Sequence record: OP557969.1
Length of the DNA: 64,000 bases
Reading direction: 5' to 3' (one strand)
Shown: positions 1,188 to 55,039 of the stretch, piece by piece
Position numbering within the stretch: the first letter of the stretch is position 1
Layout of the letters: the number at the start of each line of letters is the position of its first letter
The notes under the pieces: generated by a model
The model's input: only the letters and a program-made list of their open reading frames with translations
The model's database searches: none
Told to the model about the DNA's origin: nothing
Program-made: the position numbers and the translations under genes

Positions 1188-1676
1188 TTATACGGATTCG
1201 ACGATTCGTGCCATCTTTTCCGCTCTAGAAGTGGTTTGTTTATACCAGGTACTATCACGCAATTCTTTACCAGCAGTTTTATAATCAGCATTACCCAATG
1301 CGGTCATTGCTTTTTTAAATTTCAAAACTTTGGCTTTGCCCATTTGGAACACCATCATCCACAAAACACGCTGTACTTGTACTGGTGCAGTCATGCCAAA
1401 TTGCTCATAAATTGATTTTGCGTCATTGTACGCGGCCTGAGCATCTTTAATAAGAAGTTGTTCAGCTTGTTCTTCAGTTAAGCCATTTTTGAAGTTTTCA
1501 CCAGGAAGAACTAAATGACCATAACCAATAGTATCAAGTCCCAAGCTATCTTTATATACCCAAAACTTATCATTTTTAAAATAACCAAGTTTTTTCTGAT
1601 AAGCAATAGTTCCTTCAAATTCTTTGATTTCATTAAAAAATTGCTCATCTGTATTTTTAATTTCCCATTTACTCAT
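1188..1676 (-). CDS. Stand-alone T4-type lysozyme (GH24), probable endolysin
   Basis: E...YKDSLGLDTIGYGHL carries the E-D-T triad; MVFQMG and STWYKQTTSRA motifs; exact TATAAATA late promoter upstream. Confidence 0.9.
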   Translation of the reverse strand: MSKWEIKNTDEQFFNEIKEFEGTIAYQKKLGYFKNDKFWVYKDSLGLDTIGYGHLVLPGENFKNGLTEEQAEQLLIKDAQAAYNDAKSIYEQFGMTAPVQVQRVLWMMVFQMGKAKVLKFKKAMTALGNADYKTAGKELRDSTWYKQTTSRAEKMARIVESV

Positions 1677-1692
1677 AAAGACATCCTTATAT

Positions 1693-1700
1693 TATTTATA
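1693..1700 (-). promoter_or_regulatory. T4-type late promoter TATAAATA
   Basis: Exact reverse-strand TATAAATA 17 nt upstream of the lysozyme start; window encodes gp55. Confidence 0.7.
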
Positions 1701-1712
1701 GTACTAAAATAT

Positions 1713-4376
1713 TTATTGACATGCCTCTAAACGACGAGCCATTAATTCAGCACGGCGTGTTGTTTGACGATACCAAGCCGAATTTCGTATTTGAGCAGCA
1801 GCTTGTTTATAGTTTCCTTTGGCTAATTCAGACAACATGGTCTTAAATTTAAGGACACCCCCTTTACCCATCTGGAATACCATTTGACATAGAACTTGTT
1901 GTGCCATGTAAGGAGTTTTCATGTTATATGATGCATAAATTGCCTTAGCATCATAAATTGCTTTACTACTGTCTCTAACAAGCATATCATTGGCTTCTTG
2001 TTCAGTTATACCTGACGAAAAGTTCTCACCGCTAACAATTAAGTGACCGTATCCAATAGTAGGGAATCCACGACTATCTAAGTAACGCCAGAATTTACCA
2101 TTACGGTAATATCCTTTTGCTTGTTGATATTGTATTGTACCCTCATATTCTTTTAATTCCGAAATAAACTGAGCATCACCTGGGACGATTTTCCAATCTA
2201 TTGCTGTTTTATCTACGTTACCAACATTATATGTAGGTTGTTCAACTGGCGTTGATGATACACTTCTACGTTGTGTTCTTCTTTTGCGTGGTACATGTCG
2301 TGAACCACGCTGAGAATAACCAGTCCCAATTGTTTTAATTTTAGTAGTTACTACTAATTCATCACTATCTACTGACGGTTGCACAACTGCTTGCGGTGAC
2401 GATTGATTAGTTGCTTTTCCAGCAATCAAAGTTTTATTAGCTGCATCTGCTCCAATTCCAGTTTGTGATGCATAGAACAATCCCGGATCAACTGAACCAC
2501 TAAACCCAAGTACATTTGCAGACGTTACACGTATTTCAAATTGAATAACACCTTTAGCTTTACCTATAACTTGTCCTTTTTGAACAACATCTTTATTCAA
2601 TAAATCAGTTTGAATATTATAAAATATAGATTTATATCCAGATTTGTGTTGTATTAAAATACCACCATTAGTGATTGCAACAACACCACCATCTGGTGCA
2701 ACAACATCACCTTTGCATTGTATTTCCCATCCAGAACGATCTGCTTTTCCACCGTTTTGTGTTGGAATACCTTTCCCCCAGTAACCATATTGGCGAATTG
2801 TCCCACTACATGGCATATACATATGTAAACCTTCATATGTGATACTATATCCAGTCATTCCAGCATCAGATACCATCAAATCTTGTGTTTGTACTTGTTC
2901 TGTTTCAGGTGTATAGTTAATAAACTGTATAGCTTCAGTTTCTTGAGCTTCTGGAATTTCTGGCGTAACATCATTAGCAGGTTGTGGCTGTACTGGTGAT
3001 TCACTTGAAATCTTCCCACCGCCTTGTCTCGGTGGTTCAACAGTGCTACCATGTTTTTCTGCATTAACCCAAGCAGAAATGTCATGAATGTGTTCATTTA
3101 GACCCGTAGATGGTGTTTTAAAGTTAGGAGCAGTAAATTCAGCAGTCCCGCTGTTTCCTCCACTGTTAACAGTCAATGTTTGACCACCACCGCTAATTAT
3201 TGCTGATGATGAACCAATTAAATTTGCGGAAGTAGAAGCAGATATAGATGCATTTGAACCTGCGGTAATATCAGTACTACTACCACTTTGCATACGCAAT
3301 GATGCAGCAGTAACTAATCGGAGATCTGCACCAGAATTAACAACAACCTGACCACCAACTTTTGCATCAAGTGCACCAATTAAATCCAACTTAGTATTTG
3401 CACCAACACGTGCATTGAAATCTTGACCAGATTCAATATTATATGAACGACCAGCAATCATATTAATATCCTGACCAGCACGAATATTGATATTCTTATC
3501 ACAATGCATATCAATATCACCTTCACCTGTAAATTTTATGCGTGCTGTTCCGTCACGGTTAATTAACAGAACGTCGCCTGTTGCTTCTGACAGTAATAGC
3601 TGTGCACCACTGCGAGTTTTTATAACAACTCCTTCATTTTTACGGGAACCAACACGTGTATCGTTTACTGGGTTATTAAATTGTGTATCCTGATAACCAT
3701 CTGGATCTTGATCCCATGTAGGTGCGGTTAATTCCTCTTCAGTATATCCATCATCGATAATAAAACTATTTCCACGTGGTGACGACATACCATATACAGT
3801 ACTGGTTGTCTGGCGGGTGCTACTGCGATTAGCAAGACCTGCTTCTTCATCATATAAAAGGTTTTGTTTTTTCAAACCAGCAATGATTGGAACGTTTGCA
3901 TACTTATCTTGCATGTCTGTTGTGATTGTGTTACGATCATAATCAGTAACAGGGATAGGCATATCCGTTCCGCTATAACTACTAACTTCAGTTGCCATGC
4001 CTGGAACCATAGTATTCATGCGATGGTCATATACACAACCAATCCAATATGCCTGAAATGTACGTGCCTGTGCGAAAATCACAATAACAGTGCACCCAAC
4101 ATCAGGCGGTACAGCCCAGAATCCATAGCCTTTGGGATATTGACCATATGCATCGGCACTTGGAATACCTGGTGTTTTGCCAGCAAATGGTGACATATAT
4201 GATGCTTCAATCCATGATTCTTTGGAATTTTTATCACTTTGTGAACCTTGTATCCAAACTTTCAATTTTCCTGATTTAGTTGGATCTCTATTATCCATAA
4301 CCGTTGCTAACTGTGGGTAAGATGGGTCAAAACGACCCAACTGTTGTTGTGCATACTTTTTACTTGTATCTGCCAT
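1713..4376 (-). CDS. Baseplate central spike/tail lysozyme, gp5-like (OB-fold, beta-helix, M23-like domain, C-terminal lysozyme)
   Basis: N-terminal DPTKSGKLKVWI...GYGFWAVPPDVG (gp5/VgrG OB-fold); Gly/Ser/Ala beta-helix repeats; HIH tip motif; C-terminal YLDSRGFPTIGYGHL lysozyme. Confidence 0.85.
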   Translation of the reverse strand: MADTSKKYAQQQLGRFDPSYPQLATVMDNRDPTKSGKLKVWIQGSQSDKNSKESWIEASYMSPFAGKTPGIPSADAYGQYPKGYGFWAVPPDVGCTVIVIFAQARTFQAYWIGCVYDHRMNTMVPGMATEVSSYSGTDMPIPVTDYDRNTITTDMQDKYANVPIIAGLKKQNLLYDEEAGLANRSSTRQTTSTVYGMSSPRGNSFIIDDGYTEEELTAPTWDQDPDGYQDTQFNNPVNDTRVGSRKNEGVVIKTRSGAQLLLSEATGDVLLINRDGTARIKFTGEGDIDMHCDKNINIRAGQDINMIAGRSYNIESGQDFNARVGANTKLDLIGALDAKVGGQVVVNSGADLRLVTAASLRMQSGSSTDITAGSNASISASTSANLIGSSSAIISGGGQTLTVNSGGNSGTAEFTAPNFKTPSTGLNEHIHDISAWVNAEKHGSTVEPPRQGGGKISSESPVQPQPANDVTPEIPEAQETEAIQFINYTPETEQVQTQDLMVSDAGMTGYSITYEGLHMYMPCSGTIRQYGYWGKGIPTQNGGKADRSGWEIQCKGDVVAPDGGVVAITNGGILIQHKSGYKSIFYNIQTDLLNKDVVQKGQVIGKAKGVIQFEIRVTSANVLGFSGSVDPGLFYASQTGIGADAANKTLIAGKATNQSSPQAVVQPSVDSDELVVTTKIKTIGTGYSQRGSRHVPRKRRTQRRSVSSTPVEQPTYNVGNVDKTAIDWKIVPGDAQFISELKEYEGTIQYQQAKGYYRNGKFWRYLDSRGFPTIGYGHLIVSGENFSSGITEQEANDMLVRDSSKAIYDAKAIYASYNMKTPYMAQQVLCQMVFQMGKGGVLKFKTMLSELAKGNYKQAAAQIRNSAWYRQTTRRAELMARRLEACQ

Positions 4377-27871: not shown

Positions 27872-30800
27872 ATGTATATCGATGCTTATATGGAACGTAA
27901 ACGTACTGGTGATATTCTTCATGTTGTTGAACGTAAAAATGGTAAACGTATTCTACGTGAATTAGATCCAGTATATGAATATTACGTTGAATCTCCCCAA
28001 GGTACACACAAAACTGTGTATGGTACAATGGCTAAACATTTTGAGTTTCAAACACAAGCTCAAATGAATAAAAGTGTAGAGCAGCACAAAAGTGAAGGTC
28101 TACGTATTTTTGAAAGTGATTGTAACATTACATTTAAAACACTAGCAAAAGAATATATGGGGAAAGGCTCACCGGACTTGAATATTGTTTTCTTCGATAT
28201 CGAGACTGATTTCCATAAGAAATTTGGCTATGCCCCGCCATCAGACCCATTCAACCGTGTAACAGCCATTTCCCTATATCAATCATGGACCGGAAAAGAT
28301 TATGTACTTACTTTACCACCTGATGATATGGAAATTTATGAAGCACAGGACATTGTTCGCAAACTAAATGAAGAAACAAACGATCCTAACAGTACTGTAA
28401 TTCTATATACAGACGAAAAGGAAATGTTTATGGAATTCTTTAGTTTAATTGATGATTCTGATATTATTTCAGGATGGAATAGTGAATTCTTTGATATTCC
28501 ATATATGATCAATAGAACTAAAAAAATCTTCAATGAAGCAACAACTGCACGTTGGTGTTTGTGGAATAAAAAACCAACTTCGCGTGAAGCCGATAACTTT
28601 GGAAAAATAGTTCAAACTTATGATCTGATTGGTCGTGTTCATCTTGACTACTTGGCATTGTATAAAAAACATGCTGGTCAGGTTGAACAATCTTATAAAC
28701 TGGATTATATTGCAGAAAAAGTAACTAAAGAAAATAAAGTATCATATGAAGGTTCACTAGATAAACTTTACAGAGAAGATTATATTACTTTCTTACGATA
28801 TTCCAAACAAGATAGCATTCTACTTAAAAAGATTGATGCAAAGTGTGACTACATCAACCTGCACAATCGCCTGGCACATAAAGAATGCGTTCTTATTAGT
28901 ACAACAATGGGTTCTGTTGCACTTATTGACACAGCTATTATTAACTTAGCACATGCACGTGGTGAAGTTGTTTTTAACAAAGCACCCAAAGATGATGTTG
29001 AGTTTGATCCTGAAATGGAATATTATGGTGAAGATGGAATTGATGGAGAAGAGAAAATCAGTGCAAAAGCAGCAGGGGCATGGGTACAAGATCCAGTACT
29101 AGGACTTGTGAGTGACCTTGGGTGTACTGACTTTAACTCACTTTATCCTACTGTCCTACGTACTTTAGGTATGAGTACTGAATGTATTCTTGGACAACTA
29201 CGACAAGATTACACAGATGCGTATCTTGCAGATAAAATCCAGGAACAGAAGAGCAAATCTAAATCAAAATCATTTGAACCTGATTGGACTGCTGCATGGC
29301 ATGGTTTGTTTGCCGCAGTAGAGTTTACAATGGTCCATGAAAAGTCAGAAGAAACATTGATTGTGGACTTAGAAGATGGTAGTTCCTTCAAAGCAACTGG
29401 TAAGGAACTATATGATATTATTTTTGCAGAAGATAGCACGATTGTTCTTAGTGCAAACGGAACATTGTTTGATAAATCTAAATCAGGTGTAATTCCAGAT
29501 ATTCTTACACAATGGTATTCTGAACGTAAAGCCCAGCAAAAAATGGTTATTGATTACAAACATATGTGTACGGATGGCTGGGAGTTTAATGGTCATGAAA
29601 AAGTTGAACCATTGCTATCCAACTATACACATGGAACTATGTTTAGAACCAATATCCATGATAACGATCCAGTATACTTACTTCGTAAAGAAATTGGTAA
29701 AGGACAATGGGATGAAGTTGCTAAGTTGATTGTTGAAAACGGCTTAATCCTAAAAGAAGGTCGCATTTTTTGTCCAAACGAAGAAAAAGAGTACTTTAAA
29801 CAGCGTAGTGCTTTCTGGAAACAGAACCAACAGATTCGTAAAATTCTTCTAAACAGTCTATATGGTGCACTATTGAACAAAGGTTCTCGTTTCTTTGATA
29901 AACGTTTAGGTCAATCTGTTACATTAACTGGTCGTTCAATGACTAAGCACATGGCAAGTCGTATCAATGAAATCACAACTGGTGAATATATCCACCACGG
30001 TGGTTCTGTAATTTACGGTGATACTGACTCCGTTTACTTTAGTGTGACACATTATCTGAAAGAACAAGGCATCCCATATAATTTATCAAAAGAAGAAATT
30101 GTTGATATGTATATTAAAATTGGTGAAGAAGTTGGTGAATCTTTCCCAACATTTATGCATGAAATGTTCAACACTGGTATTGAAAAAGGTAAGATTGTCG
30201 GTGCAGACCTTGAGATGGTTGGTTCCCGTGGATTATTCTTGAAGAAAAAACGTTATGCAATCTTGAAGTACTGGGAAGATGGCTTCCGTAAAGATATTGA
30301 TGGTAAACCCGGTGAAATCAAAGCAATGGGTCTTGAGATTAAACGTTCAGATACACCAAAATACATCCAGAACTTCCTAGAAGAGACACTAATTGCACTA
30401 CTGGTAGGTGAGAGTGAACAGCAATTAAAACAGCGTGTACGTGCTTTTAAAGATGTATTTAAGGACATGCCAGTATACGAAAAAGGATCACCAAAAACCG
30501 TAAAAAATTACACTAATTTAGAGGCAGAATATCAACTAACTGGTAAGTGTAAGGTTGGTCATGTTCTTGCTGGTATTCAATGGAATCGTCTTCGTGAAAT
30601 TTATGATGATAAAACAGTACCAGAAGTAACTGATGGAACAAAAGTGATTGTCTGTAACTTAAAAGATAACCCTATGGGAATTAAAGCTGTTGGTTATCCA
30701 ATTGACTGTGTTGAGTATCTTCCAGAATGGTTCTTGGAATTACCATTTGATACTGAAAAAATGGAAGAGATTGTCCTGACTAAAAAATTAGAGAATATTT

Positions 30801-30877
30801 TTGGTATTTTAGATATGGATATTGGTATTCATGAAAAAAGTACTGCATCAGTAAACAATGGATTCTTCACTTGGTAA
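27872..30877 (+). CDS. gp43: Family B DNA polymerase, gp43-like
   Basis: Exonuclease motifs DIETD, WNSEFFDIPY, YSKQD; polymerase motifs DFNSLYP, KILLNSLYG, YGDTDS, KKRY. Confidence 0.97.
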   Translation: MYIDAYMERKRTGDILHVVERKNGKRILRELDPVYEYYVESPQGTHKTVYGTMAKHFEFQTQAQMNKSVEQHKSEGLRIFESDCNITFKTLAKEYMGKGSPDLNIVFFDIETDFHKKFGYAPPSDPFNRVTAISLYQSWTGKDYVLTLPPDDMEIYEAQDIVRKLNEETNDPNSTVILYTDEKEMFMEFFSLIDDSDIISGWNSEFFDIPYMINRTKKIFNEATTARWCLWNKKPTSREADNFGKIVQTYDLIGRVHLDYLALYKKHAGQVEQSYKLDYIAEKVTKENKVSYEGSLDKLYREDYITFLRYSKQDSILLKKIDAKCDYINLHNRLAHKECVLISTTMGSVALIDTAIINLAHARGEVVFNKAPKDDVEFDPEMEYYGEDGIDGEEKISAKAAGAWVQDPVLGLVSDLGCTDFNSLYPTVLRTLGMSTECILGQLRQDYTDAYLADKIQEQKSKSKSKSFEPDWTAAWHGLFAAVEFTMVHEKSEETLIVDLEDGSSFKATGKELYDIIFAEDSTIVLSANGTLFDKSKSGVIPDILTQWYSERKAQQKMVIDYKHMCTDGWEFNGHEKVEPLLSNYTHGTMFRTNIHDNDPVYLLRKEIGKGQWDEVAKLIVENGLILKEGRIFCPNEEKEYFKQRSAFWKQNQQIRKILLNSLYGALLNKGSRFFDKRLGQSVTLTGRSMTKHMASRINEITTGEYIHHGGSVIYGDTDSVYFSVTHYLKEQGIPYNLSKEEIVDMYIKIGEEVGESFPTFMHEMFNTGIEKGKIVGADLEMVGSRGLFLKKKRYAILKYWEDGFRKDIDGKPGEIKAMGLEIKRSDTPKYIQNFLEETLIALLVGESEQQLKQRVRAFKDVFKDMPVYEKGSPKTVKNYTNLEAEYQLTGKCKVGHVLAGIQWNRLREIYDDKTVPEVTDGTKVIVCNLKDNPMGIKAVGYPIDCVEYLPEWFLELPFDTEKMEEIVLTKKLENIFGILDMDIGIHEKSTASVNNGFFTW

Positions 30878-34959: not shown

Positions 34960-41278
<6,319 letters not shown>

Positions 41279-44125: not shown

Positions 44126-44944
44126 ATGACAAAATTAAATGAATTCTTATCAAATATAGCAGTTCTTGATACTGAAACCACTGGCGTTGAAAGTGATGAT
44201 GATATTATTGAATTTAGTATCTCATATCCATATACTTCACATGAAAACATTGATACTATTGATAACTATACATTGCGATATAAACCACTGAAAGATATTC
44301 CACCAGAAGCATCGGCTGTTCACTTTATCAGTACTGAGGATGTAGCTAATTGTGTTGGGTATAAAGATGATTTAGATAACATAGATGCACTTATGGGATG
44401 CCGTAAGTATTTTGTTGGTCATAATGTACAATTTGACCGTAGAATGATGGTAGATAATGAATATAAATATCGTAACTCAGTTTCACAGTACTTACTCGAT
44501 GAAGATAAATGGATTTGTACTCTTCGTTTGGCTAAGAAAATGTTTGCAGAAGATACCGAATATAAAAACTTAACTCTAAGTTATTTGTGGTATAAGTTTG
44601 GATGCCATCGAGATGTTCACAGACCTATTAATGCTCACGCGGCAAAAGATGATGTATTCATGTGTTATCAGGTTCTAATCAAATTGGTTGAAATTGCCAT
44701 CGAACGTGGTCATATTGATTCCAATGGGGATATTGGTGAACAAATAGTAGCTTTTTGTAACACCCCAATGCGTTATCAATTCATGCCATTTGGTAAACAT
44801 AAAGGTGAGCCAATGAATACAGTACCATTGAATTACATTGAATGGATGATCACTAATAGTGACATTTTAGATGCAAGTAACCCTAACTGTGATAAAGATT
44901 TAGTATATACATTTGAGTACGAATATAATACTCGAACTAATTAA
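44126..44944 (+). CDS. DEDDh 3'-5' exonuclease (DnaQ/ExoX-like)
   Basis: LDTETTG, GHNVQFD, AHAAKDD; C-terminal MPFGKHKG module. Confidence 0.9.
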   Translation: MTKLNEFLSNIAVLDTETTGVESDDDIIEFSISYPYTSHENIDTIDNYTLRYKPLKDIPPEASAVHFISTEDVANCVGYKDDLDNIDALMGCRKYFVGHNVQFDRRMMVDNEYKYRNSVSQYLLDEDKWICTLRLAKKMFAEDTEYKNLTLSYLWYKFGCHRDVHRPINAHAAKDDVFMCYQVLIKLVEIAIERGHIDSNGDIGEQIVAFCNTPMRYQFMPFGKHKGEPMNTVPLNYIEWMITNSDILDASNPNCDKDLVYTFEYEYNTRTN

Positions 44945-44959
44945 CAAAGGTAATCATGG

Positions 44960-47539
44960 ATGAAAATTTGTAAGTTAACTTTATTGGATGAGGTGAATTG
45001 TAAATTTGAGGGACTAGATCCCTCAATTCGACAAAAGATGATTCGTGCAACTGAATATGTGCTACCATATGCAAAGTTTACACCAGCAGGTCGTATTGGG
45101 CGTTGGGATGGTAAAGTACAATTCATGAACTTAGGTGGAAGCACATACTTTCATATGCTTGATAAACTTTTACCTATTCTTGACGAAGCTAATATTGATA
45201 TTGAATTAGAAGATCATAGACTAAATTACGGTTTCGAATTTGAACCAATTGATGAAAATATTTTTAGCGATGTTGTTTTTGGTCCTGGACACCACATGGA
45301 AGGTAAAAGTATTATCCTACGTGAACATCAGGTAAATGCAGTAAATTCGTGTTTAGCTAACCCACATGGGTTGGTTCTGGCAGCAACTGGTGCAGGAAAA
45401 GCCCAGCCACTTGATGAACCAGTTCTTACCATTAATGGATGGAAACGAATGGGTGACATAAAAGTTGGCGATATAGTAAAATGTCCTGATGGAACAAATG
45501 CTCCCGTCCTTGGTGTATATCCACAGGGAATTAAACCAACAGTACGAATGACATTCTCGGATGGACGAAGTGTCGAATGTTGTGATGAACATTTATGGAA
45601 TATATATAGTATTGCTGGTGAAAAAAACCCTGAAAAACGATGGAGAAACCTTTCTGTTAAAGAAATCATTGAATTACAAAATAAACAAAAACGTCCAGTA
45701 TATATTAAAACAATCACTGGTGATATTTTTGAAGAAAAAGAATTACCAATACATCCATATATTTTAGGTGTATTACTCGGTGATGGATGTTTAAGAAATG
45801 GTAATATAATGTTATCAAGTTCAGATGAATTTGTTATTGATAAGGTATCTTCATTATTACCTGATGGTTATATTATCAAGAAAAAACAATCATCAAAATA
45901 TGATTATAGTATTGTCATGGATGATACAAAAAAGAAAGAATATTTATGTAAAAATAATAAAGAAAGATATAACGAACTTAGGGTTATTTTGGAAGAACTT
46001 GGAATTTATAATAAGTATTCATATGAAAAGTTTATCCCTGAAATTTACAAAATGTCATCAATTGAACAACGTCTGCAACTCATTCAAGGATTAATTGACA
46101 CGGATGGTTATGTTGATAAAAGATTAAAAAACGGAAAGTCCCGAAATGTGGTGGAATTTTGTAGTACATCAGAAAAATTGGTTGATGATTTGAAAGATAT
46201 AATGAATAGTTTAGGTGGTTACGGTATTAAAAAATCTAAACAAACTTATTATACCTATGCAGGGGTAAAACAAAAAGGTCGCCCAAGTTTTAAAATGAGA
46301 ATTGATTATAATAATCTTAATGCCTTGGCTAGTTTACCTCGCAAAAAAGACTTTTTATATTCAGAAAGAAATCGTGTTGAAAATAAACTAAAAATTGAAA
46401 AAATTGAATATATTGAAGATAAAGAATGTCAATGTATCTATATTGATCATCCAGAACATCTATATATTACCAGAGATTATATCGTAACACACAATACAAT
46501 TATTTGTGCTGCTTTGGCGAAATCGGTACAAAAATATGGACGTTCTGTTATCATTGTCCCCAGCACTGACCTAGTACAACAAACATATGATGATTACATT
46601 ATGTGTGGATTAGATGCTGGTATGTTCTATGGTGCACAGAAAGATTTTGGTCATCAACATACTATTACTACTTGGCAATCATTTAACTCTCTATGGAAGA
46701 AAACCAAAAAAGGTGAAATTGAATTAACAGAACAAGACGTAAATGATTTTATTGATGGGGTAGTTTGTGTTATAGTTGATGAGTGTCAAGGTGCTGGTGG
46801 TGATGCATTAGTTCAAGTACTATCTAAAGTTATGAACAACGTACCATTGCGTTGGGGTCTTACTGGTACAATTCCGAAAGATCCGGTTGTTGCAGCGAAA
46901 ATCAAATGTAATGTTGGTGATGTTATATATAAAATCACTGCAAAGGAATTACAAGATAAAAAGATACTAAGTACATGTAATGTGAATTGCATTAAACTAA
47001 AAAGTAGTATGAAGTTTGCATCATATGCTGAAGAGTTGAAATACTTAGTAACTGACAGAGATAGAATGGCATATGTAGCGTCATTGATATCTGCGTTATC
47101 TGAATCAGGAAACACTTTAGTTTTAGTAGATAGACTTGAAGCAGGTGAGTTGCTATGTGAATTTTTAGGCATTCCCAAATCAGAATTCGTTCGTGGAGAA
47201 ACTAAAAAGAAAGATCGAGAATCATCTTATGGTGAAATTCGTTGGGCTGATAATAAAATACTTATTGCGACATACGGCGTTGCCAGTACTGGTATCAGTA
47301 TTTCAAGGCTATACAATGTAGTATTGATTGAACCTGGAAAAAGTTTCGTAAGAACTATACAATCAATCGGACGTGGATTACGCCGTGCTGAAGACAAAGA
47401 CCATGTTGAAATATATGACATTAGTGGTTCTAATAAGTATAGTGCAAAGCATTTACGTGAGCGTCTCGCTTACTATAAGGAAGCACAATATCCTCATACA
47501 GTAATAGACGTTAAAGATTGGGAAAACACAGCGGGATAA
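44960..47539 (+). CDS. uvsW: Superfamily 2 helicase UvsW with intein
   Basis: LREHQ, ATGAGK|intein|T, VDECQ, GLTGT, QSIGRGLR. Confidence 0.93.
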   Translation: MKICKLTLLDEVNCKFEGLDPSIRQKMIRATEYVLPYAKFTPAGRIGRWDGKVQFMNLGGSTYFHMLDKLLPILDEANIDIELEDHRLNYGFEFEPIDENIFSDVVFGPGHHMEGKSIILREHQVNAVNSCLANPHGLVLAATGAGKAQPLDEPVLTINGWKRMGDIKVGDIVKCPDGTNAPVLGVYPQGIKPTVRMTFSDGRSVECCDEHLWNIYSIAGEKNPEKRWRNLSVKEIIELQNKQKRPVYIKTITGDIFEEKELPIHPYILGVLLGDGCLRNGNIMLSSSDEFVIDKVSSLLPDGYIIKKKQSSKYDYSIVMDDTKKKEYLCKNNKERYNELRVILEELGIYNKYSYEKFIPEIYKMSSIEQRLQLIQGLIDTDGYVDKRLKNGKSRNVVEFCSTSEKLVDDLKDIMNSLGGYGIKKSKQTYYTYAGVKQKGRPSFKMRIDYNNLNALASLPRKKDFLYSERNRVENKLKIEKIEYIEDKECQCIYIDHPEHLYITRDYIVTHNTIICAALAKSVQKYGRSVIIVPSTDLVQQTYDDYIMCGLDAGMFYGAQKDFGHQHTITTWQSFNSLWKKTKKGEIELTEQDVNDFIDGVVCVIVDECQGAGGDALVQVLSKVMNNVPLRWGLTGTIPKDPVVAAKIKCNVGDVIYKITAKELQDKKILSTCNVNCIKLKSSMKFASYAEELKYLVTDRDRMAYVASLISALSESGNTLVLVDRLEAGELLCEFLGIPKSEFVRGETKKKDRESSYGEIRWADNKILIATYGVASTGISISRLYNVVLIEPGKSFVRTIQSIGRGLRRAEDKDHVEIYDISGSNKYSAKHLRERLAYYKEAQYPHTVIDVKDWENTAG
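45401..46495 (+). mobile_element. Intein (365 aa) with LAGLIDADG endonuclease in the UvsW Walker A motif
   Basis: Starts AQPLDEPVLT, block B CCDEHLW, ILGVLLGDG and LIQGLIDTDG, ends CQCIYI...VTHN before T(+1). Confidence 0.93.
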
Positions 47540-48531: not shown

Positions 48532-49377
48532 GTGTTTGATTTCAGTGATATTAAAAATAAGTCAGTCGATGATGATAATAAACCAACCCAGCATTCTTTT
48601 TCTATTGCTGAATTTCTAAAACACATTGACCGTGCAGATTATAAGTTCTATAATGAACTGACGGAAAAAGAACAAAAAGAGTTTACGCCATATACTGTAT
48701 TACGTTGGGTAAGCTCTTTGGATGATTCACTACAAGTCACATATCCCAGTAGTAAAGTTGAAAGTGTATTTGGTAAATGGAAAGCTGGTGGTAAAGAAGC
48801 ACTAACTGAACTAGTAACTGAATTAAAGGCTTCTGGGACTAAGGTTTCATCAGTGACGAAGTACTGTCATGGTGATTATGATTGGCGTATTAAATTTGCA
48901 GTCCAATCAAAAGATGATGCACATAAATTAATATCATCAATGATGGAATTTGGTGTCTCTGGTTCTGAAATTATTTCATTAGTAGATACTGAAGTAGTGA
49001 AATACCAACTTATTATGCTAAATGATATGGTTAATGATGGTTTCTGGGATATGAAAGAACATCCAGAATTAGTATATCAGCTTATGTGTTCTGTACATGA
49101 TATGATTGGTGCACAAGAAATGCCACGTAATTGGTTGAATTTTTCTAAAAATTTCAAAAAGGCAAATAATGAATTATTTGATTTGATTAAAAATTCACAG
49201 CCTGATACTATCGCTACTCAAATGAATGAAGATGAGTACAAGATTGTTTTATTACAGTATGATAAAAAAACATTTGAAACATTTCTTGACAATAATGGTT
49301 TTCAAGATAATGAAAAGAAATCTATGATGAAATTATTTAAAGAAGAATGTAAAAAATATGGCAAAGAAATCAAATAA
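48532..49377 (+). CDS. Possible clamp-loader small subunit (gp62-like) with an internal insertion
   Basis: FLKHID...FTPYTVLRWVSS...LNDMVN...HPEL pattern resembles gp62-like proteins. Confidence 0.4.
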   Translation: MFDFSDIKNKSVDDDNKPTQHSFSIAEFLKHIDRADYKFYNELTEKEQKEFTPYTVLRWVSSLDDSLQVTYPSSKVESVFGKWKAGGKEALTELVTELKASGTKVSSVTKYCHGDYDWRIKFAVQSKDDAHKLISSMMEFGVSGSEIISLVDTEVVKYQLIMLNDMVNDGFWDMKEHPELVYQLMCSVHDMIGAQEMPRNWLNFSKNFKKANNELFDLIKNSQPDTIATQMNEDEYKIVLLQYDKKTFETFLDNNGFQDNEKKSMMKLFKEECKKYGKEIK

Positions 49378-50068
49378 ACAAGTATATACGTGTAAATTTT
49401 GTGATCGTGAATTTAAGCGAGAAGAAACAGTACAGACACATAAATGCATAAAACGTGACAGATACGAAAATAGACAAAGCCGCCAGATGATGGAGGCGTT
49501 TCGTATCTATATGCAATTTATGGAATTGAACAAATTTACATTTAAAAAAGGCGTAGAGCCTTTTATTGCTTTTATAAAGTCAAAGTACTTTAACGATTTT
49601 TATAGTTTTGCTGAATACTATTTGAATAATAGAGATATTATTAATGTTGACGAGTTTGTAAAGTACTTAATTATTAATAACAGACCAATTACAGAATGGA
49701 GTACTTACAAAGCAAAAGATGAATGGATATTAAAAACGATTCGTTCTGAGCATCCAAAAGAAGCGATTGCAAGAAGTGTGATATCGTTGGTTGAATGGGC
49801 TGAAAAATTGAATGTACAATGGAATACTTTCTTTGAAAATGTGAGTTCTGCCCGTGCAATTGCATGGATTGAGAGTGGGAAAATATCACCATGGATCATT
49901 TGGTTATCTCCAAAACAAAGTACTAATACATTTTTTAAAAAGCTATCAAACTCAGAAATTGAATACATACTTAAATACATTGATCCAAGTTATTTTGAAA
50001 TTAAAACGATCAAATATAAAACGGATTGCGATGAAATTAAGAGTATGCTACGTGAGGCAGGATTATGA
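49358..50068 (+). CDS. Hypothetical protein with an N-terminal C2H-type zinc finger
   Basis: YTCKFCDREFKREETVQTHKC. Confidence 0.65.
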   Translation: MAKKSNKQVYTCKFCDREFKREETVQTHKCIKRDRYENRQSRQMMEAFRIYMQFMELNKFTFKKGVEPFIAFIKSKYFNDFYSFAEYYLNNRDIINVDEFVKYLIINNRPITEWSTYKAKDEWILKTIRSEHPKEAIARSVISLVEWAEKLNVQWNTFFENVSSARAIAWIESGKISPWIIWLSPKQSTNTFFKKLSNSEIEYILKYIDPSYFEIKTIKYKTDCDEIKSMLREAGL

Positions 50069-50394
50069 ATGGAAAAAGTATATATAATAAAATACCAGAA
50101 GGGTATGTACCTGTACCAAAAGAACAAAAAACAAAACAAATATCTCTTCTTAGACAAGGATCTATTACTGAAATAACTTTGGATGGTAAAACATTTCAAG
50201 TTCATGATCCCGCTCGTGTTGAAAAAATAATTTCTTTAGTAGAACGACATGAAGAACGTTTTTTTAGTTTAAGTCAGGAGTTAGCAAAGACGAAACAAAA
50301 TTATAAAATATTAGAGAATCAAATAACCACCTTGACTAATACCGTTAAACAGTTACAGGAGCAAGTAAAAAATGCAGGATTCGACAGATTCTAA
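50065..50394 (+). CDS. Hypothetical coiled-coil protein
   Basis: 109 aa with a C-terminal heptad pattern; overlaps both neighbours. Confidence 0.7.
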   Translation: MNGKSIYNKIPEGYVPVPKEQKTKQISLLRQGSITEITLDGKTFQVHDPARVEKIISLVERHEERFFSLSQELAKTKQNYKILENQITTLTNTVKQLQEQVKNAGFDRF

Positions 50395-51010
50395 ACATTA
50401 CAGAAAAGCCAGAACTGATATTGATATTGACTTCAAGGATAGTAAAAGCGTCATCGCTAAACTTCCATGCGTGCGAAGTACTGAGAAAATTACTGAGGAT
50501 GGTTTAATCCCACACAATAGTGGTGTTCATTTTGATAATATACCAATTGACCCAATCACTGGATTGGCGAGTATACAATATAAAGAAGCTGAAAGGTTAG
50601 GGTATCAAAAAGTTGATATTCTTTCACAGTCAGCTTACATGTATGTTCGCGATAGAGAGCATTTAAAAGAACTAATGAATCAGGAACCGAATTGGGATCT
50701 TTTACTAGAACCCGAAATTGTAGAGCATCTTTCGCAAATTAAAAAACACGTAACTTTATTAAATGTATGGAAGCCTAAATCAATTGACGAACTTGCAATG
50801 TTTATTGCTATGATTCGACCAGGAAAAAGGCAGTGCCAAAGTATGAACACATGGGACGAAGTAAAAGCCACCATATGGGATTATAGTACTATTGGCACTG
50901 ACCAATCAGGAAATAAATTGCGATATTTCAAAAAGCCACATGCTTATGCATATAGCTTAATGATTGTAGTCCAACTAAATGCTTTAGTTGAACACCTTAC
51001 TTCTTCTTAA
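50372..51010 (+). CDS. Minimal DNA polymerase III alpha (DnaE/family C)-like catalytic core
   Basis: TDIDIDF, HNSGVHF, GYQKVDIL, KPKSIDELAMFIAMIRPG, YFKKPHAYAY correspond in order to DnaE PDIDIDF, HAGGVVI, GLLKFDFL, P..F.DL.A..AL.RPG, Y.FNKSHA.AY. Confidence 0.8.
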   Translation: MQDSTDSKHYRKARTDIDIDFKDSKSVIAKLPCVRSTEKITEDGLIPHNSGVHFDNIPIDPITGLASIQYKEAERLGYQKVDILSQSAYMYVRDREHLKELMNQEPNWDLLLEPEIVEHLSQIKKHVTLLNVWKPKSIDELAMFIAMIRPGKRQCQSMNTWDEVKATIWDYSTIGTDQSGNKLRYFKKPHAYAYSLMIVVQLNALVEHLTSS

Positions 51011-51350
51011 GTGCCACATTACGACGCTTGATGCGTTTCTGTGGTAAATTGCTTAAAGAAACTTCTGGACCACATACGAAATTCACCGATGGTGTATCAA
51101 ATCTATGTGTATACGGTTCAAATTTCTCCATCTCTTCTTGAAAGAATAGACACACTGGAATGGTTCTATTGCTTTGCCACCACCAATCGTGTGCTATACC
51201 TAACAATTCGTCTTGCATTGACTCATTCATGTCATCGAAACAGTACATAGTAGTATACTGTTTACTTTTGATTTTGATGATACCAATGAACGTTTTACCA
51301 TCATACTGGATTACAGTAATAAATGGTGGAATAGTGTTATATTGATTCAT
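50997..51350 (-). CDS. Hypothetical late protein
   Basis: 117 aa; reverse-strand ATAAATA at 51388-51394; divergent from the next gene. Confidence 0.65.
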   Translation of the reverse strand: MNQYNTIPPFITVIQYDGKTFIGIIKIKSKQYTTMYCFDDMNESMQDELLGIAHDWWWQSNRTIPVCLFFQEEMEKFEPYTHRFDTPSVNFVCGPEVSLSNLPQKRIKRRNVALKKK

Positions 51351-52440: not shown

Positions 52441-53496
52441 ATGAACGCTGTACAAAACATAATGGCACAAATAATGAATGACCCAGTACCTGCAATTGGC
52501 ACATGGACACATCACAACTGTCCCGCGTGTGTGTTCAGAGGACATTCGAGGCCGGACATAAAGAACCGTGGTAATCATATGTTCAATGCCGATGGTTCCG
52601 TTTCATATAACTGCTTTAACTGTAGTTTGAAAACTGGCTGGCAACCAGGAAAATATATGAGCAAAGATATGGAGTCTTTGCTCATTTCTTTTGGTGCACA
52701 AGATAAAGAAATTGAATTAGTTAAGTTTTATATTAAAGAAATGGTTGATAGTGGTGAATATGCTACACAAGAAACCGTTGTAACAAAACTATATGACCGA
52801 ATAACGGTACGTGATTTACCATCAAATGCTAAAACATTTTGGGATTGGGCTTCACTACCAGAAGATAAAATTCCGCAAGAATTTTTGAGTGTTTTACATC
52901 ATGTAAATGAAAGAAATCCATATTTGTTGGATTTGGAATTATATTGGTCACCTAATAAAGAACATAAAATGTATGATAGATTTATGATTCCTTATTACAT
53001 GAATGGTAAAATAATTGGTTATGCTGCTAGACATAAATTAAAAGATCCGGGAAGCACATACAGATTTATAAATCAGGTAAGTACTAATATATTGTATAAT
53101 TATGATTTATTGAAAGATGACAGAATAAAAACGATTTTAGTATGTGAAGGGCCGTTGGATGCAGCATTGATGGGCGGTGTATCTGCTAATAACTTTAAAT
53201 TATCAAACTTGCAGATTGACGTATTAAAAGATGCCCAGAAAAAAGGGAAAAGGATAGTTATTGTTCCAGATAGAGACAAAGATGGATTAATAACAATAGA
53301 CCAAGCACTTGAAAATGGATTCAGTGTGTCTTTCCCTGATTTTGGTACAGTAAGAGAAGGTAGTACGATACGTCATATCAAAGATTTTGAAGAGGCGTGT
53401 TCGCGATTTGGTAGGTTATTTTGCTTACAATTAATACATGATAGTATAGTAGATGAGCCATTTTATATTAAAGCTCAAACTGATAAATGGATGTAA
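52441..53496 (+). CDS. gp61: DNA primase, gp61/DnaG-like
   Basis: Zinc ribbon CPAC...YNCFNC; TOPRIM CEGPLDA and PDRDKDG. Confidence 0.88.
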   Translation: MNAVQNIMAQIMNDPVPAIGTWTHHNCPACVFRGHSRPDIKNRGNHMFNADGSVSYNCFNCSLKTGWQPGKYMSKDMESLLISFGAQDKEIELVKFYIKEMVDSGEYATQETVVTKLYDRITVRDLPSNAKTFWDWASLPEDKIPQEFLSVLHHVNERNPYLLDLELYWSPNKEHKMYDRFMIPYYMNGKIIGYAARHKLKDPGSTYRFINQVSTNILYNYDLLKDDRIKTILVCEGPLDAALMGGVSANNFKLSNLQIDVLKDAQKKGKRIVIVPDRDKDGLITIDQALENGFSVSFPDFGTVREGSTIRHIKDFEEACSRFGRLFCLQLIHDSIVDEPFYIKAQTDKWM

Positions 53497-53518: not shown

Positions 53519-55039
53519 ATGATTCAAAGCACAGTGGATGTGAAACAATATGGGATTAATGCACAACAATACTTATTATCTCAGATTTTCAGTAATCCTG
53601 ATTTGTATGTACGTTGTAAAAATATCCTTAAACCTGAATATTTTGATAAAACATTTCATGAAAGTATTCAATTCGTACATGATTACGCCGCAAAATATAG
53701 TTCTTCTCCAACGTTGAAAGATATTGAAGTTAAAGGTGGTTATCAATACGATCATTATGAAGTACAAGAATTACATAAACAATCAGTACTTGATACCTGT
53801 GGTGAGTTTTGTCGCCATAAAGCATTAGCATTGGCAGTTGAAAAAGGAATGGAACTTGTTCATCAGAAAAAATATGGTGGAATCGAAGAGCTAATCCGAG
53901 AAGCGATGTTGGTAACTGTACAGAATGAGTTAGGTTTGGACATTTTTGAAAATCCAGAAGATACCATTCGCTCACTAAGTTCAATGCAAGGGTCATTTAA
54001 AAGTGGATGGGAAACTCTTGATTATAAACTTTTCGGTGGTTTTGGGCGTAGAGAGTTAGAGATCTTTGCTGCTGCATCAGGTGGTGGTAAATCAGTAGTG
54101 TTGCAAAATTTAGCAGTAAACTTTGCTAAAGCTGGTATGAATGGTGCATACATCTCACTAGAACTAGCTGAAGAGTTGGTTGCAGTTCGTATCTATGGTA
54201 TGATGACAGAATCGAAGCTCAGTAATGTAAAAAATGAAGCTGAAAAGATTGGATTTGCCGTTAAGGTAGAAGGTAAAAATAGTGGCATCTTGCGTATTAA
54301 ACGTTTACCTGAATCTGTAACAACAACAGATGATATTGAAAGCTATTTGCGTGAATTACAAATTAAGTTGGAAATAAAACTTGATTATGTATGCGTGGAC
54401 TATTTGGATCTATTAACTTCTAATCGTCTTGGTCCAAATGATAAATCCAACACATTTACAAAAGACAAATTTGTATCAGAAGAATTACGTGCTCTTGCGT
54501 CCAAAATGGATCTAACAGTTTTCACTGCATCACAGTTTAACCGTAGTGGGATGGATGAAGATAAGAAAAGTCAAAGTCAGATTGCTGGTGGTATTTCTAA
54601 AATTTATACTGCGGATAACGTAATTTATATTGAAGCAAAAAAAGACACTGGTGAATTATGGTTTGATTTTCAAAAAACACGTAACAGTAGTGCTGTTGGT
54701 TCACGTTTGCGTATGTCATATGATATTGATTCATTGCGTGTTCTTGATCATGCAACTACAGTACAACAAATGGAAACTGAAGGTAATGGTTTTCGACACA
54801 GTGGACTCTCTAAGATTGGTGGGGGTAATATGGTGTTACCACCTAGTACAATGCAAACATTGCGTCATACGCTCTCTGGTGCTGCCAAAACACCATCTAC
54901 ACAACCAAACAATCAGATAACACTAAATACTGATAGTGCTCCTAACACCGCAACACAAAATGACTCACAGTCACCGCCACAACACGCGGCTTCTGACCGT
55001 GTTCATGCGATGAAGCAATGGTTAAATCAAAGGAAATGA
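53519..55039 (+). CDS. gp41: Replicative DNA helicase, gp41/DnaB-like
   Basis: AASGGGKS, YISLEL, VDYLDL, TASQFNR, KTRN. Confidence 0.93.
   Translation: MIQSTVDVKQYGINAQQYLLSQIFSNPDLYVRCKNILKPEYFDKTFHESIQFVHDYAAKYSSSPTLKDIEVKGGYQYDHYEVQELHKQSVLDTCGEFCRHKALALAVEKGMELVHQKKYGGIEELIREAMLVTVQNELGLDIFENPEDTIRSLSSMQGSFKSGWETLDYKLFGGFGRRELEIFAAASGGGKSVVLQNLAVNFAKAGMNGAYISLELAEELVAVRIYGMMTESKLSNVKNEAEKIGFAVKVEGKNSGILRIKRLPESVTTTDDIESYLRELQIKLEIKLDYVCVDYLDLLTSNRLGPNDKSNTFTKDKFVSEELRALASKMDLTVFTASQFNRSGMDEDKKSQSQIAGGISKIYTADNVIYIEAKKDTGELWFDFQKTRNSSAVGSRLRMSYDIDSLRVLDHATTVQQMETEGNGFRHSGLSKIGGGNMVLPPSTMQTLRHTLSGAAKTPSTQPNNQITLNTDSAPNTATQNDSQSPPQHAASDRVHAMKQWLNQRK

Follow-up and report, generated by a model that had tools for sequence, protein, structure and literature searches.

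Sequence record OP557969.1 derives from Escherichia phage ph0011, a Rak2-like jumbo myophage of the genus Asteriusvirus (121Q/PBECO4 group) with a 348-kb genome. A stretch of 64,000 nucleotides (nt) of this record, referred to here as the window and 100% identical to the ph0011 sequence, contains an open reading frame (ORF) of 212 amino acids on the plus strand (positions 50372–51010) whose product is almost certainly the C-terminal, metal- and DNA-binding half (C-half) of a split minimal polymerase resembling the α subunit of bacterial DNA polymerase III (Pol III α, DnaE; polymerase family C). The ORF is real, with the coordinates given in a preliminary description of the window made from the sequence alone. 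It opens with an ATG and its first 23 nt are shared with the upstream gene, which encodes a protein of 109 amino acids. A full-length family B polymerase (PolB) with exonuclease and polymerase domains, also recognized in that description, is encoded on the plus strand of the same window (27872–30877) and is presumed to be the main replicase of the phage. The suggestion that small relatives of the ORF might already be annotated proved correct. The orthologue in phage 121Q, gp16, is named ‘DNA polymerase’ in RefSeq, and several recent GenBank records name one or both halves of the enzyme Pol III α or DnaE-like. The 212-residue protein itself matched PHROG 11778 ‘DNA polymerase’ (E = 2e-108), a word-index protein search returned 785 homologues, and the family comprises 512 clusters at 50% identity.

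The motifs of the C-half occur in the order known from DnaE, as the preliminary description had proposed, and are collinear with those of Escherichia coli DnaE. The motif TDIDIDF (residues 15–21, nt 50414–50434, plus strand, as are all motifs below) places the metal-binding strand Asp16-Ile-Asp18-Ile-Asp20 (50417–50431) at the extreme N-terminus, where the three aspartates correspond to Asp401, Asp403 and Asp405 of E. coli DnaE. It is followed by His48-Asn-Ser-Gly51 (50513–50524), equivalent to His511-Ala-Gly-Gly514 and, judging from the motif and the model described below, probably strand two of the thumb's basal hairpin. Lys80-Val-Asp82 (50609–50617), within QKVDIL (79–84), supplies the counterparts of Lys553 and of Asp555, the third catalytic carboxylate. 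The finger ‘RPG’ motif (Arg639-Pro640-Gly641 in E. coli) is present as Arg149-Pro150-Gly-Lys152 within IRPGK (148–152; nt 50816–50827), and the finger helix ‘NKSHSAAY’ of DnaE as Lys187-Lys-Pro-His190-Ala-Tyr-Ala-Tyr194 within FKKPHAYAY (186–194; nt 50930–50953). In this helix, Lys187, His190 and Tyr194 are collinear with residues 757–764, Lys188, His190 and Tyr194 corresponding to Lys758, His760 and Tyr764. In the literature, Asp401, Asp403 and Asp555 form the catalytic triad of E. coli DnaE, His511 and Lys553 touch the primer, and His760 is the steric gate against ribonucleotides, the position taken by His190 here. Because the E. coli strand PDFDVDF holds Asp401, Asp403 and Asp405, the catalytic pair of the phage protein is Asp16 and Asp18, with Asp20 as the counterpart of Asp405. 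The three catalytic aspartates are thus retained, as the preliminary description had stated, but its DIDID motif supplies only two of them and the third is Asp82. Conservation of the aspartates was confirmed in 25 aligned homologues of down to 40% identity, in which Asp16, Asp18, Asp20, His48, Gly51, Lys80, Asp82, Arg149, Pro150, Lys152, Lys187, His190 and Tyr194 are all invariant.

An AlphaFold2 model of the C-half (pLDDT 88) was compared with known structures. The 11 best matches in the PDB were all Pol III α, and the named matches in a viral structure library were phage DnaE-type polymerases, so that the expected likeness to the DnaE palm was found, and with C-family polymerases only. With VIA-align, residues 8–212 of the model superposed on residues 456–841 of Taq DnaE (Z = 9.2) and 394–784 of E. 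coli DnaE (Z = 8.3–8.5). About 390 DnaE residues are therefore packed into 205. The first residues fall at about E. coli position 394–399, the match stops at 784, and everything past approximately that point is gone. From the model, the thumb's helical body (E. coli ~439–502) appears to be replaced by a two-residue turn between the two strands of the basal hairpin. The YQEQ motif of the index finger could not be recognized in the comparison with E. coli DnaE. The PHP, helical thumb, clamp-binding, HhH, OB and C-terminal domains gave no Pfam or NCBIfam match and lie outside the structural alignment, which bears out the earlier statement that no region of the protein fits a PHP, clamp-binding, HhH or OB domain. 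The NCBIfam DnaE equivalogs (e.g. PRK05673, TIGR00594) did not match the C-half.

A second gene for the missing half of the palm

The C-half starts a few residues before the strand carrying the DxD motif, and in distant homologues the protein begins directly with MDIDIDF. The ORF lacks the palm's N-terminal portion, which bears the GS (GRGSS) triphosphate-binding loop. The preliminary description had taken the product for a miniature DnaE core. It is indeed a reduced DnaE-type piece with catalytic acidic residues, but it holds part of the palm only and not a complete core. A search of the 121Q genome with the Pfam profile PF07733 located the missing half of the palm as a separate small ORF. 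In ph0011 this N-terminal half (N-half) is WAE77267, a protein of 172 amino acids annotated as ‘DNA-pol3-alpha domain-containing protein’ and encoded at 269040–269558 of the record. The gene lies 32.7 kb downstream of the C-half gene (record position 236372) and about 19 kb past the end of the window.

The N-half scored above the Pfam cut-off for PF07733 (E = 7e-10). Its residues 99–172 aligned with residues 321–397 of E. coli DnaE using hhalign (E = 5e-6), and the NCBIfam DnaE models placed it at about 280–390. The motif WG-x-GRGSSV-x-SY is invariant in the aligned N-halves, which stop at EFLK or within a few residues of it, where the C-halves take over with DIDIDF. In the PDB, a profile combining fused and split members of the family matched nothing but chains of DnaE (E = 2e-9), and its significant stretch on E. 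coli DnaE (320–421) crosses the junction and continues through PDFDVDF. Joining of the two halves by split-intein trans-splicing was considered and rejected, there being no spare residues at the junction. With no intein sequence at that point, the association of the halves must be non-covalent.

Among 50,697 phage records, 96 carry the C-half and 94 the N-half, with near-identical tallies by genus, and nearly all of these records are jumbo phages of 286–490 kb. The halves also occur as natural single-chain fusions, namely P0181, P0390 and P0391 (375–376 amino acids, in three clusters on separate contigs) and the shorter P0257 (336 amino acids). When compared with the fused form by BLASTP, residues 5–171 of the ph0011 N-half corresponded to fused residues 10–180 and residues 1–202 of the C-half to fused residues 179–375. 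The Pfam DnaE match in P0181 likewise spans the junction (97–207, E = 5e-16). The unsplit P0181 and P0391, of 375–376 amino acids, are encoded on metagenome contigs (L013:1066–2193 and L016:519–1649, respectively). Fused genes of this type occupy the locus at which cultured jumbo phages have the C-half only and are followed by homologues of a small reverse gene found there, joined on the second contig by a homologue of the virion protein. In an unrooted tree of C-half domains, in which sequences were called ‘split’ by length only, the fusions grouped into two distinct clades, both with good support, that lie among proteins of split length, implying two changes of state. Repeated fusion of the halves is the more economical explanation on the basis of this tree, not a proven one.

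The fourth fused protein, P0257, is encoded on a 7992-bp JGI metagenome contig (L014), where a two-gene segment (1516–4181) also encodes a 552-residue protein with a PF03090 ‘Replicase’ domain and a helix-turn-helix. The P0257 gene shares 4 nt with the end of this second gene and is translationally coupled to it. PF03090 is related to the archaeo-eukaryotic primases. On this premise, P0257 may represent an independent tie to priming, within a two-gene primase-polymerase module of a small element. Two further proteins, P0403 and P0404 (540–551 amino acids, with PHP and PF07733), are weak relatives of the fused form and may represent a further kind of reduced DnaE, or else fragments.

Structure prediction was applied to the halves together and to the fused form. 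The C-half of the window and P0270, a protein 95% identical to the ph0011 N-half, were folded as a complex without alignments and reached an ipSAE of 0.89 in three runs, compared with 0.00 for the best control. Solved complexes attained such a score in 51 of 78 cases, mismatched pairs in 2 of 108. The predicted interface consists of residues 11–22, 76–84 and 187–200 of the C-half, which face the GRGSS loop (134–145) and the C-terminus of the N-half, with the loop resting against the DxD strand. The AlphaFold2 model of fused P0181 (pLDDT 86.7) matched 16 PDB chains at E ≤ 1e-3, all of them DnaE or PolC. It superposed on residues 302–800 of Mycobacterium tuberculosis DnaE1 with a Z-score of 22.6 and a root mean square deviation of 2.9 Å over 289 residues, as well as on E. 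coli DnaE 270–773 and PolC 817–1288, the next unrelated structure being Pol beta (Z = 3.2). From these spans it follows that the composite begins exactly at the end of the PHP domain and reproduces the palm and inner fingers.

Genomic setting of the two genes

Three genes upstream of the C-half gene figure in the preliminary description. The most distant, for a protein of 281 amino acids (48532–49377), had been proposed as a possible clamp-loader subunit. Searches of Pfam, PHROGs, NCBIfam and the ESM Atlas returned nothing for it and the identification was rejected, the annotated clamp-loader large subunit instead lying near the N-half gene. The remaining proposals for the neighbourhood, a zinc-finger protein, a coiled-coil protein, a primase and a helicase, were borne out. 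The zinc-finger protein (49358–50068, plus strand, 236 amino acids) is of the C2HC type, with invariant Cys12, Cys15, His28 and Cys30 (C-x2-C...H-x-C); its helical body is conserved as well. Members of its family occur in phages only, and in four distant jumbo-phage lineages the protein is encoded zero to two genes upstream of the C-half. The gene that overlaps the start of the C-half (50065–50394, plus strand) encodes the coiled-coil protein of 109 residues, which relatives list as a virion structural protein. A convergent gene of 117 codons on the minus strand (50997–51350) overlaps the 3’ end of the C-half by 14 nt. The same layout recurs in PAC2, Atu_ph07 and Phosso, as well as next to the fused genes of both metagenome contigs, L013 and L016. 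Further downstream on the plus strand lie a primase (52441–53496), so annotated in relatives but without a matching Pfam family, and a DnaB-type helicase (53519–55039). None of the three upstream neighbours resembles a polymerase or supplies the missing half of the palm.

This order is conserved in Asteriusvirus, in PA5oct-like Pseudomonas phages, in Agrobacterium phage Atu_ph07 and in Sinorhizobium phage Phosso. It runs from the zinc-finger protein and other small proteins (coiled-coil ones in some lineages) through the C-half, the convergent gene and a protein of about 240–340 amino acids, virion structural by annotation in most, to the primase and DnaB. All lineages examined have these last two downstream of the C-half, with two genes in between. 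The N-half has a conserved setting of its own. In ph0011 the genes after it are a small one, one for a co-chaperonin of the GroES type and one for the large subunit of the clamp loader, an AAA+ ATPase (record positions 269040–271606 for the whole array). The order N-half, small gene, GroES and, some genes later, clamp-loader ATPase also holds in PAC2 and Phosso. Both arrays form part of the conserved backbone of the clade, and synteny alone is therefore no proof of functional coupling.

The window also carries genes for a gp32-like single-stranded DNA-binding protein and for RecA/UvsX-like, UvsY, UvsW-like and DnaB-like proteins alongside PolB. A stand-alone DnaQ/ExoX-like 3’–5’ exonuclease of the RNase_T family (44126–44944, plus strand) is located in the same replication block and could conceivably act as a proofreader in trans. 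The exonuclease was rejected as a specific partner given that it is also found in many small phages that have no mini Pol III, which makes its co-occurrence uninformative. Two other plus-strand genes of the window show signs of insertion. The UvsW-like helicase (44960–47539) has 859 residues compared with 494 in 121Q, and its additional segment of about 364 residues (149–512) contains a LAGLIDADG domain, interrupts the Walker A motif at GAGK|T and ends in His-Asn before the following Thr; it looks like an intein starting with Ala. The terminase large subunit (37470–39854, 794 amino acids) matched LAGLIDADG_3 and Hom_end at about residues 192–272, probably reflecting a second intein or a homing-endonuclease insertion.

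The ratio of non-synonymous to synonymous substitution rates (dN/dS) of the C-half between ph0011 and 121Q is 0.010, compared with 0.056–0.088 for its neighbours, the primase and the helicase at similar dS. The C-half is under very strong purifying selection. A scan for promoters and terminators found sites no more numerous than in shuffled sequences, and the C-half gene goes unmentioned in the PA5oct transcriptome paper.

Proposed activity and role of the two-chain enzyme

The reading preferred here is that the 212-residue protein is one partner in a two-subunit, minimal polymerase of family C which synthesizes short patches of DNA beside PolB, and a probability of roughly 0.6 is assigned to it. 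The homology, the division into halves, their co-occurrence, the fusions and the strong purifying selection are shown by the data; assembly, catalysis and biological role are inferred, as follows. The N- and C-halves would associate non-covalently as a heterodimer, and the two chains would together rebuild a Pol-beta-like palm and a shortened finger domain. With the palm rebuilt from two chains, the active site would span the subunit interface. The GS loop of the N-half would bind the triphosphate of the incoming deoxynucleoside triphosphate, while Asp16, Asp18 and Asp82 of the C-half would bind two metal ions, His48 and Lys80 would hold the primer, and His190 would keep out ribonucleotides and select for deoxyribose. 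Such an enzyme has no PHP domain, helical thumb, YQEQ motif, clamp-binding motif, HhH, OB or proofreading domain. It would thus be expected to act distributively and without proofreading, properties suited to short-patch synthesis. It may extend primers made by the primase, or fill gaps close to the primase and helicase, before handing over to clamp-bound PolB. Templated DNA synthesis by the two-chain enzyme is judged likely; the specific role at the fork is a guess, held at less than even odds.

Several considerations weigh against this proposal. Searched alone, the C-half bears only a weak likeness to DnaE. The single sequence matched DNA_pol3_finger in Pfam at E = 0.045 and gave no significant DnaE match in the PDB, its family profile found only M. 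tuberculosis DnaE1 in the PDB, in four collinear pieces at E = 1.2, and hhalign placed residues 69–149 on E. coli DnaE 545–642 at E = 0.04. The N- and C-half genes are never adjacent but 14–224 kb apart, which is odd for obligate partners, and their joint presence, being within a single clade of phages, does not amount to independent evidence. The score of the predicted complex may partly be memory, within the model, of the solved single-chain DnaE structures. With the YQEQ motif and the body of the thumb missing, accurate template-directed synthesis is not assured, and T4-type replisomes, to our knowledge, operate without any such enzyme. A search for expression found traces of the sequence only in wastewater metatranscriptomes, at 5–15% of sampled words, and in runs of unknown kind, and RNA could not be distinguished from phage DNA. 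No experimental work on the split mini Pol III was found in the literature searched.

That description had read the protein as a stand-alone nucleotidyltransferase, active alone or completed in trans by the products of adjacent genes, the 281-residue, zinc-finger and coiled-coil proteins. This chain does carry all three of the acidic residues together with the finger motifs, the gene overlaps the run upstream of it, and the zinc-finger neighbour is kept beside the C-half in four lineages. However, the chain opens at the DxD strand and has no GS-loop half of the Pol-beta-like palm. That half is neither part of the C-half nor carried by any neighbour, none of which resembles a polymerase or clamp loader; it is encoded by the co-occurring 172-codon gene 32.7 kb downstream and is joined to the C-half in the natural fusions. 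On these grounds, both forms of the earlier reading are regarded as very improbable. An equally small chance is given to the pair being a catalytically dead remnant, kept as a structural or regulatory part of the replisome. Extreme reduction of the protein is compatible with this, as are the scores of the full-length NCBIfam DnaE models, which fall far below their cut-offs (17–34 bits for the N-half against cut-offs of 434–1806, and 54 bits for the fused form against 434). It is difficult to reconcile with the invariance of every expected catalytic residue in the 25 homologues, the persistence of the family as 512 clusters, and a dN/dS of 0.010.

Two further explanations keep the two-subunit enzyme active and are each considered improbable, though less so than the preceding two. 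The enzyme may not be a templated DNA polymerase, serving instead as a terminal transferase, as an enzyme that synthesizes primers or uses ribonucleotides, or as one that produces a nucleotide signal or a modification of DNA. The Pol-beta-fold superfamily includes many non-templated transferases, the thumb body, YQEQ, HhH and OB elements have been lost, and the phage already has a complete PolB. Against this stand the invariant steric gate His190, the invariant primer-contacting residues His48 and Lys80 and the invariant RPG and KxHxxxY motifs, together with the location of both genes in replication arrays and of one fused form directly after a ‘Replicase’ gene. Alternatively, the enzyme may be a polymerase of repair or damage tolerance similar to DnaE2/ImuC, engaged in gap filling, recombination-dependent synthesis or lesion bypass away from the fork. 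The absence of a proofreading domain would suit such a role, as would the RecA/UvsX-like, UvsY, UvsW and gp32-like genes of the same block, and repair is among the options listed by Iyer et al. (2021; PMC7824862). Nothing sets this possibility apart from a fork-associated role, a damage-inducible context is not visible, and very strong purifying selection and universal presence in the clade fit a core function. Beyond the preferred reading of a short-patch polymerase beside PolB, a more far-reaching version can be put forward tentatively, with the odds somewhat against it. The two-gene enzyme would be active and, at about 384 amino acids, the smallest known of family C, with a cross-interface active site and a part as primer-extension or gap-filling partner of the family B replicase, while the rare unsplit forms, one of them coupled to the PF03090 ‘Replicase’ gene, would be self-sufficient minimal replicases of small elements.

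Relation to known C-family polymerases

The finding of a split mini Pol III is real but has already been described. Iyer, Anantharaman, Krishnan, Burroughs and Aravind (Iyer et al. 2021, Viruses 13:63; PMC7824862) predicted the family computationally and reported a phage-specific catalytic module, a split minimal Pol III, beside a family B polymerase in group 2.2 jumbo phages, formed by an N-terminal NTP-binding protein and a C-terminal Mg- and DNA-binding protein encoded by distant genes. The same authors suggested that the module acts jointly with PolB, either to make one of the strands or for repair, and the paper on phage CBB (2017) had already remarked on a ‘truncated’ Pol III α of 172 amino acids. 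The ORF of the window is the C-terminal protein of that family, with no essential difference, and two distant genes, a PolB, T4-type replication and recombination genes and a jumbo myophage genome are all found in ph0011. Added here are the residue map to E. coli DnaE, the unsplit forms at the C-half locus, the ‘Replicase’-coupled form, the prediction of the complex with controls, and the selection figures. The published description covers split forms only, and the unsplit genes lie outside it.

With bacterial DnaE and PolC the phage enzyme shares a Pol-beta-like palm with the Asp401/Asp403/Asp555 triad, a GS loop that resides in the partner, the His511 primer contact, the RPG motif and the helix bearing His760, and the fused model superposes on their palm and fingers at a Z-score of 22. 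It differs in having about 384 amino acids in two chains rather than about 1160 in one, and the PHP domain, helical thumb, YQEQ motif, outer fingers, clamp-binding motif, HhH, OB and tau-binding domains of DnaE are absent from it. In cyanobacteria, DnaE is also encoded by two distant genes, whose products are joined by a split intein. The phage protein is divided elsewhere, between the region of the GS loop and the DxD strand, and has no intein. By analogy, a second, less processive polymerase at a fork where another enzyme does most of the synthesis, encoded close to primase and helicase, recalls Bacillus subtilis DnaE, which extends primers for PolC, and eukaryotic Pol alpha, which precedes Pol delta and Pol epsilon. 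Unlike in those systems, the main replicase here is of family B and the helper would be a two-chain minimal enzyme of family C.

For annotation, the ORF is to be read as half of a published split enzyme whose partner lies outside the window. If active, the two small proteins would represent the catalytic minimum of the bacterial replicase family and a tractable model of the Pol III palm and fingers free of the PHP, thumb, clamp-binding and OB modules, and a two-chain polymerase of 384 residues with activity tied to subunit association would be a possible scaffold for engineering. If the proposed role is true, these phages would operate a hybrid fork in which a bacterial-type, C-family helper works with an archaeo-eukaryotic-type family B replicase, and this would matter for the discussion of independent origins for the bacterial and archaeo-eukaryotic replicases.

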